A stretch of 64,000 nt of DNA from Macrostomum lignano (GCA_002269645.1 NIVC01000070.1:558001-622000), one strand, 5' to 3'; positions 43,227 to 47,544 are shown, counted from the first letter of the stretch. The notes: generated from the sequence alone by a model not told the origin. Numbers and translations: made by a program.

Positions 43227-43326
43227 ATGGCCTCAACTGAACAGAGAAACGACGGTGGCGGAGGCGGCGGAGGCGGCGCCAATGATGTCAGCAGGCAGAG
43301 GAAACGTATTGGGCTGCCGCCTGACT
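43227..43326 (+). CDS. Tau/MAP2/MAP4-like protein, exon 1
   Basis: gccATGG start; MASTEQRNDGGGGGGGGANDVSRQRKRIGLPPD, then donor T|gtgagt (phase 1); acceptor tttggtag ends 6 nt upstream of the ATG. Confidence 0.7.
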
Positions 43327-43920
43327 GTGAGTCAGTGGGGTGGTGGGTGAAGTCAGTGGGGTGGTGGATGAAGTCAGTGGGGTGGTGGGTGAAGTCAGTG
43401 GGGTGGTGGATGAAGTCAGTGGGGTGGTGGATGAAGTCAATGGGGTGGTGGGTGAAGTCAGTGGGGTGGTGGATGAAGTCAGTGGGGTGGTGGATGAAGT
43501 CAATGGGGTGGTGGGTGAAGTCAGTGGGGTGGTGGGTGAAGTCAGTGGGGTGGTGGATGAAGTCAGTGGGGTGGTGGGTGAAGTCAGTGGGGTGGTGGGT
43601 GAAGTCAGTGGGGTGGTGGGTGAAGTCAGTTGGTTGGTGGGTGAAATAAATGGTGTGAAGAGTGAAGTCAATGGGGTGGTGGATGAAGTCAATGGGGTGG
43701 TGGGTGAAGTCAGTGGGGTGGTGGGTGAAGTCAGTGGGGTGGTGGGTGAAGTAAGTGGGGTGGTGGGTGACATCAGTGGGGTGGTGTGTGAAGTCAGTGG
43801 GTGGTGGATGTAGAAGTCAATGGGTGGTGGGTGAAGTCAATGGGGTGGTGGGTGACATCAGTGGGGTGGTGGGTGAAATAAATGGTGTGAAGAGTGAGGT
43901 CAATGGGGTGGTGGGTGAGG
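43327..43920. repeat. 21-bp G-rich intronic minisatellite starting at the splice donor
   Basis: Unit GTGAAGTCAGTGGGGTGGTGG; the first copy is the donor GTGAGTCAGTGGGGTGGTGG. Confidence 0.95.
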
Positions 43921-43961
43921 TGGTATATAACAATTTTAAACTTTTTCACCCGACACCGCAG

Positions 43962-44027
43962 GGCAAGCTGAACAAGGAAAGGAAATTCCACCAAAGGTCG
44001 ACACGCTCAATCAGGAATACAAGCCCA
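43962..44027 (+). CDS. Tau-like protein, exon 2
   Basis: ccgcag|GG CAA ... CCC A|gtaagt; (W)QAEQGKEIPPKVDTLNQEYKP; phase 1 to phase 1. Confidence 0.75.
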
Positions 44028-44111
44028 GTAAGTGCACTGATAGAAGATTTATTAACCCCCGCACTTTCCAGACTATTTCAGAGAAAAACCATCTCTCAAA
44101 ATTATTAATAG

Positions 44112-44224
44112 GCGGCGGTAACCGAAAGATATTCAAAGAGAAGTTGGACTTTTCCAAGAACGCCAAGCCAAAGGTGGAAACCATGAGTAACAAGGACTAC
44201 CAACCAGGCGGAGGAACCAAGAAG
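44112..44224 (+). CDS. Tau-like protein, exon 3 (microtubule-binding repeat)
   Basis: ttaatag|GC; (S)GGNRKIFKEKLDFSKNAKPKVETMSNKDYQPGGGTKK|gttcag; resembles the tau [22 protein letters not shown] and KHQPGGG segments. Confidence 0.8.
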
Positions 44225-44425
44225 GTTCAGTCTTACAGCTTTGTTGTTTTTCAATTGTTTAATACACACAATCTGTCCTTCAGATTAACAATAATTGCGT
44301 TAACTGTTTGAAGCTCAACTGAAAGTTTAACAGTTTGCATGGCTAACTAAAGGCACAGAACTATATTTGCAATTCAAAATATTTTTTCTCACTAACAGCC
44401 AGCACTAATTATTAATCTGCATCAG

Positions 44426-44515
44426 GTGTTCCAACAGCGGTTCACCTGGAGCGTGACTTCGCGGATCGGGTCGCTTGAGAATTTGCGGCACAGACCAAGC
44501 GGAGGCGACAGAAAA
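44426..44515 (+). CDS. Tau-like protein, exon 4 (microtubule-binding repeat)
   Basis: catcag|VFQQRFTWSVTSRIGSLENLRHRPSGGDRK|gtgcat; close to the tau R4 segment [21 protein letters not shown]; 90 nt, phase 0-0. Confidence 0.8.
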
Positions 44516-44689
44516 GTGCATTATTAATTAATTAATGAGAGAATTATTCTTTATGACTTCCTCACTTAGCTGAATTTGCAGTGAACAAGATTAGCGCTGC
44601 ACTTTAGACTTCATGCACGTGTGGGTCCGCAGGTTCAGGTGACCTTCTAATTCAGTTAGAATAGTGTTAAGCCCCCTCTGTGTAGATAA

Positions 44690-45055
44690 ACAGAGACAGA
44701 CAGACAGACAGACAGACAGACAGACAGACAGACAGACAGACAGACAGACACACAGACAGACAGACAGACAGACAGACAGACAGACAGACAGACAGACAGA
44801 CAGACAGACAGACAGACAGACAGACAGACAGACAGACTGACACACAGACAGACAGACAGACAGACAGACAGACAGACAGACAGACAGACAGACAGACAGA
44901 CAGACAGACAGACAGACAGACAGACAGACAGACAGACAGACAGACAGACTGACACACAGACAGACAGACAGACAGACAGACAGACAGACAGACAGACAGA
45001 CAGACAGACAGACAGACAGACAGACAGACAGACAGACAGACAGACAGACAGACAC
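44690..45055. repeat. (GACA)n intronic microsatellite
   Basis: Direct reading. Confidence 0.95.
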
Positions 45056-45264
45056 TACATCAGACCCGTACATTTACATGCACAATGCTAATCTGTTAAG
45101 TCAATAAGTAAAATGAAATCTCAGTTTCCTCAGTGAAGCACAACAATCGGAAGAATAGATTAGCTATCCCTACGTGTTCTCAGTTAGCGCACAACAGTTA
45201 GCATGATATTTATATACATGTAAGTACTAAACTGCATACACGAGCCACACACGAATTGTCACAG

Positions 45265-45357
45265 TGCATTTACCACCAAAGACTTCGGTGGACAAATCTG
45301 CCCGCAATCAATACCCGAGAAAATATTAATTACCGGCCAAAAACGCCTAAAGTCAGG
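45265..45357 (+). CDS. Tau-like protein, exon 5 (divergent repeat)
   Basis: tcacag|CIYHQRLRWTNLPAINTRENINYRPKTPKVR|gtgaga; 93 nt, phase 0-0; aligns with the neighbouring repeats. Confidence 0.68.
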
Positions 45358-45529
45358 GTGAGAATTATTAATATATATATATAAATGAATCACATCGCTC
45401 ATTCGAGTGCAAACAAAGGGCGCTGGTTGTAACACGCCCGATTATTTAGTAAAACAACGGCTATATAATAATTTTTCCGTTTTTAACATGCAATTTGATT
45501 TTTCTATTTTGAATGTCGATTAAAACTAC

Positions 45530-46050
45530 AAGGGTTTAAGTAAGGGTAAGGGTATAGGGACAGGGTAAGACTAGGGTAGGGATAGGGTTAGACTAGAGTG
45601 GGGATAGGGTAAGACTAGGGTAGGGATAGGGTTAGACTAGGGTAGGGATAAGGTTAGACTAGGGTGGGGTAGGGTTAGACTAGGGTAGGGAGGTTAGGGT
45701 AGGGAGGTAGTGTTTGGAGGATAGAGTAGGGTAGAGTAGGGAGGGTAGTGTTTGGGGGAGTAGGCAAGGGTAGGGAAGGTAGGGTAGGGATGGTAGAGTA
45801 AGGTAGGGTAGGGAGAGTAGGGTAGGGTAGGGAGGGTAGTGTTGGGGAAAGTAGAATAGGCTAGGGTAGGGCGTAGTAGGTAGGGAAGGTATGGTAGGTA
45901 GGGTAGGGAATAGATAAGGTAGGGAAGGTAGGTAGGGTAGGGAATGTATGGTAGGTAGGGTAAGTAGGGTAGGGCATGGTACATGTACTCGTATGTAGGG
46001 AGGGTAGGGTGGGCATGGTAGGTAGTCAGGGTAGGGTAGGGAGGAGGTAC
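45530..46050. repeat. G-rich low-complexity (GGGTA / GGGTTAGACTA) tract
   Basis: Many GGG runs separated by short A/T spacers on the sense strand of the tau-like gene. Confidence 0.85.
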
Positions 46051-46530
46051 ATTTACAAGTAGGTTAGAATCGGAATAGAAATTTTAATAGACCGAATTAG
46101 TCTATGGCAAAACCCCATACAGCGCTGTGCGTTCTTCATAGCATAATCCGAGTAAAAGTACAAGAGATACGACAAATGCATGCTCCTTAATTTCCGGCCA
46201 CAGGCTCATATCTCAATATGCCGCCTGCCAGCTCATATCGTAGCTTGAATTGCCACGCTAACAGAATATTCGTTGCCCGCGAGGTCGTCTAAAGTACTAC
46301 AAAGATATTGTGGTTTTGAAGTTCACCGCGTCCTTTTATACCCAGCGGTCGACTTCAATTCAGCTGGCATCTGCACATTAATCGCTTATAAAAAGCTCAC
46401 ATAGCCATATTCATACATAATTTTATAGTATATATATCTACTATATAGTACTTTTAGTAACGCTAAAATACCACGCGGCTGGAAATTTTGAAAAGCAAAA
46501 CTCTGACAGAAATGACACAATTTCTTTTAG

Positions 46531-46626
46531 ATCTTCAAAGAACGTGTGAATTTCTCGGAGAAGGCCACGCCGAGGTTAAACACGATGGAGAACAAAGACT
46601 ACGAGCCGAAGCGGAACGAGATTAAG
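46531..46626 (+). CDS. Tau-like protein, exon 6 (repeat)
   Basis: ttcttttag|IFKERVNFSEKATPRLNTMENKDYEPKRNEIK|gtaatt; 96 nt, phase 0-0; clear paralogy to exon 3. Confidence 0.8.
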
Positions 46627-46760
46627 GTAATTGCAGATCATATTAATGAGTTCAGTTTGGTTAGGTGGTAGGTCACTGGTGCCACCTATGGCTTAAGTAT
46701 ACTCACAACCATACAAGACGTGACACATTGAAAGCGTTCACGAGTGTATTTTTCTGACAG

Positions 46761-47200
46761 GTGAGCCAGTGGGATGTCAGGTGAGCCAGTGATATGTCAG
46801 GTAATACAGTGGTATGTCAGGCGAGTCACTGGGTCAGGCGAGTCACTGGATCAGGCGAGTCACTTGGGTCAGGCGAGTCACTTGGGTCTCAGGTGAGCCA
46901 GTGGCATGTCAGGTAATACAGTGGTATGTCAGGTGAGCCAGTGGCATGTCAGGTAATACAGTGGTATGTCAGGTGAGCCAGTGGCATGTCAGGTAATACA
47001 GTGGTATGTCAGGTGATACAGTGGTATGTCAGGTGATACAGTGGTGTGTCAGGTAATACAGTGGTATGTCAGGTAATACAGTGGTATGTCAGGTGAGCCA
47101 GTGGCATGTCAGGTAATACAGTGGTATGTCAGGTGAGCCAGTGGTATGTCAGGTGATACAGTGGTATGTCAGGTGAGCCAGTGGTATGTCAGGCGAGTCA
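46761..47200. repeat. 20-bp intronic minisatellite containing CAG|GT(G/A)A motifs
   Basis: Units GTGAGCCAGTGGCATGTCAG and GTAATACAGTGGTATGTCAG, with a few shorter GTCAGGCGAGTCACTGG copies. Confidence 0.92.
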
Positions 47201-47253
47201 GTAGGGACCAGGCTCCCAGAAGCTCTCCTGCACATGTCCGGACACCGCCGCAG

Positions 47254-47544
47254 GTGTACCACGAGCGCCTGCCATGGCTGGAGGTTGAAAGTAACCGACC
47301 CAGACTCCGGCTGGTCTCGCAACAGTCTGACGCGATCAAGGACAAGCCTCAGCAGCAGGAGCAGCAACCAGCACCAACCAACGGTTCGGAATCGCCGAGA
47401 CAGCAGCAGCGGACGGCGGCCGCGGGAGCAGCCATGCGGCAGCGGCAGCGAGAATACGACCAGCGGTACCGAGGCGAGGCAAAGAGCAGCCCCGCAGCGA
47501 CCAAGCCGCGTCAGCTCGACAACGAAAGAAGCGAGCAAAAGTAG
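47254..47544 (+). CDS. Tau-like protein, terminal exon 7
   Basis: ccgcag|VYHERLPWLEVESNRPRL...DNERSEQK*; begins with a partial repeat, then a Q/R-rich tail. The seven exons total 849 nt (282 aa plus stop). Confidence 0.72.
   Translation: MYHERLPWLEVESNRPRLRLVSQQSDAIKDKPQQQEQQPAPTNGSESPRQQQRTAAAGAAMRQRQREYDQRYRGEAKSSPAATKPRQLDNERSEQK

Follow-up and report, generated by a model that had tools for sequence, protein, structure and literature searches.

Introduction

Among the described relatives of the gene reported here are vertebrate tau, MAP2 and MAP4 (MAP, microtubule-associated protein). In MAPT, MAP2 and MAP4 the second repeat is subject to alternative splicing, and in teleosts duplications of a phase-0 repeat exon give proteins with 5-7 repeats (PMC4815063). 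Non-vertebrate members form an outgroup and are not tau orthologues (PMC4815063). We describe a gene of the flatworm Macrostomum lignano which is, in all likelihood, an intact protein-coding member of this tau/MAP2/MAP4 family, belonging to its non-vertebrate "MAPT-like" group and retaining an inherited exon layout. It lies at 43227-47544 on the given strand of a 64,000-nt stretch of DNA (GCA_002269645.1, NIVC01000070.1:558001-622000), referred to below as the window; positions are counted from the first nucleotide of the window unless another locus is named.

Other invertebrates also carry members of the family. PTL-1 of Caenorhabditis elegans occurs as microtubule-binding isoforms, namely PTL-1A and PTL-1B, which have 5 or 4 repeats (PMC4155875). 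The planarian Schmidtea mediterranea has three MAP2/Tau-like genes, Smed-MAPT-L1, -L2 and -L3, whose products carry 3-4 complete repeats together with partial or divergent ones and group separately from the clades of vertebrate MAP2, MAP4 and tau (PMC6743461). Two of the three are testis-enriched, and RNA interference produced no spermatogenesis phenotype (PMC6743461). The nematode and planarian proteins are likened to the M. lignano protein by their published descriptions only.

Gene model and family assignment

The gene comprises seven exons (e1 to e7), read from the window sequence and separated by introns that are all of the GT..AG type (Table 1). When joined, they form a coding sequence of 849 nt specifying 282 amino acids (aa), whose sole stop codon is the terminal TAG. 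A preliminary description of this DNA had also arrived at 282 aa, and this length is reproduced here. The e2/e3 junction with a canonical GT donor lies at 44027/44112, which corrects the earlier placement and leaves the product unchanged. That description had further called the gene hidden, with e2-e6 missing from the open reading frame (ORF) track. The prokaryote-style list indeed has long ORFs only over e1 (43227-43649) and e7 (47146-47544), so the gene is invisible at that level, but UniProt models of it that match the Pfam profile PF00418 already exist. The whole window was searched by tblastn with the 282-aa protein, revealing no second copy of the gene, and with the paralogue P0004 (A0A1I8HWX5), revealing no upstream exon for a projection domain.

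Family membership, as first proposed, is borne out by the Pfam comparison: the whole protein scores 74.9 bits against PF00418 (cut-off 27; E 4.4e-21) in two stretches. The top sequence matches in the PDB are tau repeat regions (E 6e-21) and include microtubule-bound tau (6cvj_D, 6cvn_D). Relatives found with P0004 as query number 716 at 50% clustering. Those with informative names are MAP tau, MAP2 or MAP4-like proteins from flukes, nemerteans, arthropods, echinoderms and fishes.

The 282-aa protein has an isoelectric point of 10.19, a grand average of hydropathy of -1.43 and 57 K+R against 34 D+E. It is a short, very basic, hydrophilic and, by its composition, probably disordered protein of 282 aa or, without e5, 251 aa. 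The N-terminus is made up of only 33 residues and includes the motif RIGLPPDW. A RIGLP.DW motif is common to the paralogues P0004 and P0016 (89% identical to each other), and P0016 begins 12 residues before RIGLP. The N-termini of P0084 and P0022 are as short as that of the window protein. Together with the in-frame TAG just upstream of the ATG, the equally short relatives uphold the initial view of a very short tau-like protein with almost no projection domain.

Table 1. Features of the M. lignano tau-like gene in the window. Profile scores are for an independent profile that draws solely on relatives' repeats (those of the fluke, the paralogue, P0022 and P0084), with 500 shuffles per segment; a slash marks the exon-intron boundary.
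Feature	Position	Strand	Length and phase	Content	Repeat profile (bits)	Shuffles reaching score
TATA-like element	42996..43004	+		cttataaaa, ~225 nt upstream of ATG; candidate core promoter
In-frame TAG	43218..43220	+		two codons upstream of ATG
e1	43227-43326	+	100 nt	opens with ATG; Gly run, basic patch, RIGLPPDW motif; donor ACT/gtgagt
Intron 1	43327..43961	+	635 nt	nearly all 21-nt minisatellite, 28 copies, 43330-43918
e2	43962-44027	+	66 nt, 1->1	N-terminal half repeat, ends ..NQEYKP + 1 nt; donor CCA/gtaagt	13.5	0/500
e3	44112-44224	+	113 nt, 1->0	full repeat IFKEKLDF...DYQPGGGTKK; weak donor AAG/gttcag	41.4	0/500
e4	44426-44515	+	90 nt, 0-0	most canonical repeat; RIGS and PSGG; weak donor AAA/gtgcat	36.8	0/500
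Intron 4	44516..45264	+	749 nt	(AGAC)90 microsatellite at 44694-45054
e5	45265-45357	+	93 nt, 0-0	divergent repeat CIYHQRLRW...NYRPKTPKVR; strong donor AGG/gtgaga	16.9	0/500 (maximum 6.2)
Intron 5	45358..46530	+	1173 nt	degenerate (TAGGG)n-type array at 45555-46044
e6	46531-46626	+	96 nt, 0-0	repeat IFKERVNF...DYEPKRNEIK; good acceptor ttcttttag; donor AAG/gtaatt	29.0	0/500
Intron 6	46627..47253	+	627 nt	20/40-nt minisatellite at 46758-47202
e7	47254-47544	+	291 nt including TAG	VYHERLPWL post-repeat motif, then Q/R-rich basic tail	2.6 (start of exon)	11/500

Exon layout in flatworm and vertebrate relatives

A relative in the fluke Opisthorchis viverrini, annotated as "Tau and MAP protein, tubulin-binding repeat protein" or T265_14698 (P0023 and P0163; loci L005 and L006), shows a closely similar arrangement. 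At L005 an 82-nt exon (phase 0->1, ending ..KP + 1 nt) is followed by a 110-nt exon (1->0, ending PGGGQTQ) and then by five consecutive 96-nt phase 0-0 exons, every one of them a single repeat flanked by AG and GT; IFREQLPWL stands at the start of the last exon. Common to the two genes are the phase-1 intron after KP, an exon of about 110 nt whose end falls three residues past PGGG, a series of phase 0-0 exons holding one repeat apiece, and a last exon that opens with (I/V)(F/Y).E.LPWL. They differ in that the five fluke exons are nearly identical, all with PGGG or PSGG and with K/RIG-type cores, and are preceded by more canonical repeats, whereas the three window exons (90, 93 and 96 nt) are old and strongly diverged, two of them without PGGG. 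The annotated O. viverrini protein has two oddities on KV906303.1: it reads through the gtgagt donor after the second 96-nt repeat exon (L005 10413-10448) and includes a non-repeat "exon" (APYSFQFTAPYG...; L005 13377-13526). Both look like annotation errors, and P0163, from another assembly, differs at the same spot.

The three consecutive M. lignano repeat exons of 90, 93 and 96 nt had been noted at the outset as phase 0-0 and skippable in frame, which is correct: all 8 of the 8 combinations of e4, e5 and e6 skipping leave one open frame. Such a layout is in itself no sign of a special switch, given that the fluke relative has its five 96-nt repeat exons with the same boundaries. As judged from these genes, one repeat per exon appears to be the ordinary layout for flatworm members of the family.

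For vertebrates, a literature search for the sizes of human MAPT exons in nucleotides found no paper; the lengths given here come instead from a fish gene, the tau locus of Danio aesculapii (L004). There the mapped isoform uses three 93-nt phase 0-0 repeat exons, followed by exons of 82 nt (0->1) and 107 nt (1->0). In all, four 93-nt phase 0-0 repeat exons stand in tandem, the copy at 24908-25000 being flanked by AG and GT and unused by the mapped isoform. A further, degenerate copy of the repeat exon lies among the used 93-nt exons at about 26578-26640. Like the window gene, vertebrate tau combines PF00418 repeats with symmetric, tandemly duplicated repeat exons, and its last full repeat is bounded by introns of the same position and phase. 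The two introns around e3, one of phase 1 following KP and one of phase 0 at three residues past PGGG, likewise bound the fluke 110-nt and the fish 107-nt exons. The cut sites of the duplicated exons differ, since the vertebrate 93-nt exons end one residue after PGGG, whereas window e4-e6, like the fluke exons, end three residues beyond the P(G/S)GG position. Vertebrate tau also has a long acidic, proline-rich projection domain, which is not present in the window protein, and sets its repeat number by alternative splicing. Judging by the sequences compared, tandem duplication has produced runs of symmetric one-repeat exons on more than one occasion.

The layout is not universal in the family. 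In a paralogue from the nemertean Lineus longissimus all repeats lie in one exon; this relative had been considered as a third spiralian gene structure and was set aside as uninformative on the cassette layout. Inside an intron of the Lineus gene (OU343004.1, L003 5209-5790) lies a second tau-like repeat block, 47-54% identical to P0032, which suggests a tandem or nested paralogue. P0022, encoded at 4491-5564 of locus L001 on a 14.7-kb metagenome scaffold (ERZ23487774), is the best profile match; its 357 aa are specified by one uninterrupted, intronless ORF. Like the window gene, it has W-type repeat starts and a mixture of PGGG and non-PGGG repeat ends.

Relationships among the repeats

Tandem repeats are present as first described, but the count of five repeats plus a partial sixth is better replaced, because of the profile scores of the individual segments (Table 1), by an N-terminal half repeat in e2, four full ones in e3 to e6 and a conserved LPWL motif at the start of e7. 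The post-repeat motif VYHERLPWL corresponds to the IFREQLPWL that opens the last Opisthorchis exon and to IFNEHLPWL in P0006. PF00418 was run on single exons as well as on the whole protein; of the exons taken singly, none but e3, at 33.9 bits, and e4, at 36.0 bits, pass. The motif details given earlier are all found in the sequence: YKPSGG spans the e2/e3 junction, and the full repeats end in QPGGG (e3), RPSGG (e4), RPKTPK (e5) and EPKRNE (e6). The protein's sole Cys is the first residue of e5, which also has a TP site. Repeat ends other than PGGG are also present in the relatives P0004, P0022 and P0084.

The repeats are clearly related to one another in shuffle tests, most strongly e3 with e6 (z=15.9), followed by e4 with e5 (z=9.9, 0/2000 shuffles) and e5 with e6 (z=7.5). 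The proportions of synonymous (pS) and non-synonymous (pN) differences are 0.78 and 0.33 for e3 against e6 (~30 codons), and 0.89 and 0.54 for e4 against e5 (~30 codons). With synonymous sites saturated and pN below pS, the duplications must be old and followed by constraint at the protein level. Exons e4-e6 most likely stem from a phase 0-0 repeat exon that was duplicated in tandem long ago, as in the fluke's run of five 96-nt exons.

The paralogue P0004 is 48% identical to the protein over 48% of the query and resembles it in the RIGLP.DW motif, the short N-terminus and the order of repeats. When the two are aligned, P0004 has repeats corresponding to e3, e4 and e6, and e5 stands out as inserted. 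Exon e6, the twin of e3, matches the last repeat of P0004 (..DYEPRRPGIR), which likewise ends DYEP(K/R)R.. and not in PGGG. In contrast to the window protein, whose e4, e5 and e7 begin V/I-F/Y-Q/H-.-R-.-.-W, all repeats of P0004 begin IF.E.(L/V).F.

Database models of the gene

Three UniProt models represent the gene (A0A1I8IZ88, A0A1I8JQG4 and A0A1I8JRC6). All are PF00418-positive and ridden with errors. UniProt models of M. lignano reproduce translated window segments at 100% identity. In database models the 5' leader of the window copy is translated from 43058 on; P0001 (A0A1I8IZ88) and P0003 (A0A1I8JRC6) include it at 100% and 98% identity. All models derived from the ML2 assembly omit e5 and one also omits e4. 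As evidence for isoforms these models were rejected: their reading frame changes within exons, introns are read through, and the underlying assembly is error-rich. Their poor quality agrees with that published for ML2, in which 31.9% of bases are error-free and intact ORFs are fewer than in Mlig_3_7 (PMC5730564).

The names attached to the M. lignano tau-like models P0001, P0003, P0004 and P0008 (A0A1I8FNZ1), "Methylcytosine dioxygenase TET", "Microtubule-binding protein TANGLED", "BUD13 homolog" and "Transmembrane protein", are unrelated to the family and appear to have been mis-propagated.

Points of doubt and the status of exon 5

Several observations weigh against an intact gene that uses all seven exons to make a microtubule-binding protein. 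The 282-aa protein and its seven skip isoforms have no exact match in the protein collections searched. P(G/S)GG is kept at only 3/5 repeat ends (PSGG at e2/e3, PGGG in e3, PSGG in e4), and only one KXGS-like site is found, the R-for-K variant RIGS at residues 106-109 in e4; because so few of these motifs remain, affinity for microtubules could be low. Binding to microtubules is itself predicted from homology alone, and the pS and pN figures are each based on only ~30 codons. The other points concern e5, which is missing from all database models that span it (P0001-P0003) and has no counterpart in P0004, does not match PF00418 when run alone, and has a pyrimidine-poor acceptor.

The e5 observations could be accounted for if this exon were a decayed relic of duplication that is never, or almost never, spliced in, the true product then being a 251-aa protein with three full repeats, like the paralogue. 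We regard this as possible, if rather doubtful. Besides the evidence just listed, P0004 and P0006 both show a gap exactly at the e5 position, e5 has neither PGGG nor KXGS, and the divergence between e5 and e4 is far greater than that between e4 and the second repeat of the paralogue. Against decay, the e5 frame is still open over 31 codons despite saturation of silent sites relative to e4 (pS 0.89); an open frame of this length is expected by chance in 12% of random sequences of the local composition. Moreover e5 retains an in-frame length, its AG, its phase, a strong donor and a branch-like TACTAAA 40 nt upstream. The residues it has kept are those conserved in the family, as seen in its score against the independent profile, well above the shuffle maximum, and P0022 carries a repeat at the corresponding alignment position. 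On balance it is somewhat the likelier case that e5 is used as an exon now, or was until recently. It is most likely an old, very divergent and fast-evolving extra repeat retained as coding sequence, and among e4-e6 it is most likely the best candidate for an optional exon.

Possible exon skipping

Skipping of e4-e6 is plausible from the symmetry of these exons and the presence of two weak donors. The weak donors pointed out at the start, those of e3 and e4, are both there. Judged by the general metazoan consensus, which is not species-specific, the donors of e3 and e4 and the acceptors of e3, e4 and e5 are weak, and the e5 donor and e6 acceptor strong; a branch-like CACTAAC lies ~33 nt upstream of e4. 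A weak donor alone is no proof of regulated skipping.

A stronger proposal would make e4, e5 and e6 regulated cassette exons, yielding as many as eight isoforms whose full repeats would number from one to four, like the three- and four-repeat forms (3R/4R) that vertebrate tau makes by skipping exon 10. This would fit the phase 0-0 borders that keep every combination in frame and the departure of the e3 and e4 donors from consensus. There are precedents in the two PTL-1 isoforms, in the alternatively spliced repeat exon of vertebrate MAPT, MAP2 and MAP4 and the duplicated phase-0 repeat exons of teleosts, and in the fish tau locus with its unused AG/GT-flanked 93-nt repeat exon. The database models also join e3 to e6 (P0001) and e4 to e6 (P0002 and P0003) precisely at exon borders. 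These same ML2-derived models, however, shift frame within exons and read through introns, so that the exons they skip may be artefacts of prediction; symmetric repeat exons are the plain family layout in the mapped fluke relative and in themselves are no evidence of regulation; and e6, whose splice sites are good and which has its precise equivalent in the paralogue, looks constitutive. We therefore consider regulated skipping of all three exons unlikely. That e4-e6 are used combinatorially, as a tunable repeat code in a tau-like protein lacking a projection domain and with repeats of differing chemistry, is a very improbable extension, in which e4 would contribute the sole KXGS-like site, e5 the sole Cys and the TP site, and e6 a repeat without a PGGG end.

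Finally, since the M. lignano genome is partly duplicated, the locus might be a pseudogene, a duplicate that has lost its function: at least five UniProt models stem from the gene or its copies, several of them frameshifted, and the introns are packed with minisatellites. This is extremely unlikely given that all seven exons of the window copy are open, in phase and flanked by GT..AG, that pN is below pS between repeat pairs, and that the known ML2 error rate accounts for the frameshifts in the models.

Introns and flanking sequences

Four introns contain long tandem arrays (Table 1). The 21-nt minisatellite of intron 1 starts with the e1 donor: gtgagtcagtggggtggtgg is a slight variant of the unit and forms its first copy. 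The minisatellite of intron 6 includes 8 perfect CAG/GTGAG sites on the sense strand (13 are found in the whole window against 6.25 expected) and may represent an array of decoy 5' splice sites within the intron. A 9-mer, ATTATTAAT, is present in 7 copies in the window against 0.32 expected; four of these (44101-44109, 44408-44416, 44520-44528 and 45364-45372) lie within ~10 nt of splice sites, namely the acceptors of e3 and e4 and the donors of e4 and e5. The copies may be remnants of intron ends duplicated along with the exon, or a local splicing signal.

At the 5' end, ttggtag/GGAGCCATGG, with the in-frame TAG, could be an acceptor for spliced-leader trans-splicing, which affects 38.8% of M. 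lignano genes (PMC5730564). At the 3' end, no canonical poly(A) signal (AATAAA-type) is found in the 650 nt after the stop codon, and for this reason the 3' untranslated region may extend into or beyond a 35-nt minisatellite (47646-49965; 66 copies, 95% identity) that starts ~100 nt past the stop.

Long minisatellite and microsatellite arrays dominate the window as a whole (for example 23587-26529, 31252-33027, 37179-39760, 52112-55756 and 57033-64000) and are the cause of the extreme GC-skew blocks in its composition profile. They include a 48-nt unit repeated 145 times and running off the end of the window, (AGAC)n in 435 copies and a 21-nt unit in 141 copies. The (AGAC)n motif is common to the window arrays and to intron 4 of the tau-like gene. 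The minisatellite-filled introns agree with the published genome-wide figures for M. lignano, in which 15% of the genome consists of simple and tandem repeats and introns average ~1.1 kb (PMC5730564). Elsewhere in the window, an uninterrupted 1246-aa ORF at 9304-13044 (+) has endonuclease/exonuclease/phosphatase, reverse transcriptase and RNase H domains and looks like an apparently intact retrotransposon without long terminal repeats, of the long interspersed nuclear element type.

Discussion

An intact M. lignano gene of the tau/MAP2/MAP4 family, as preferred here, would encode a protein whose parts follow in the order of a 33-residue N-terminus, the half repeat of e2, four tubulin-binding repeats of ~31 residues each (e3-e6), the LPWL motif and a Q/R-rich tail. 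By homology with tau, each repeat would contact tubulin along the protofilament, and the protein, which has no long projection arm, would stabilise microtubules or bundle them. Its reach and affinity would depend on the number and type of its repeats.

The clean 282-aa model, with its 251-aa alternative, replaces the frameshifted and mis-named public models of this gene, and e5 is a repeat exon that had not been modelled before. Two intron positions around the repeats are common to a macrostomid, a fluke and a fish, and duplication of repeat exons at the phase-0 site occurred repeatedly in the family. Current understanding of the tau/MAP family is unchanged, repeat-number isoforms being already known there; skipping in M. 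lignano, if true, would be a further instance of this theme. As M. lignano is tractable to transgenesis, a tau-like protein without a projection domain could serve as a minimal model of how repeat number and chemistry act in microtubule binding.

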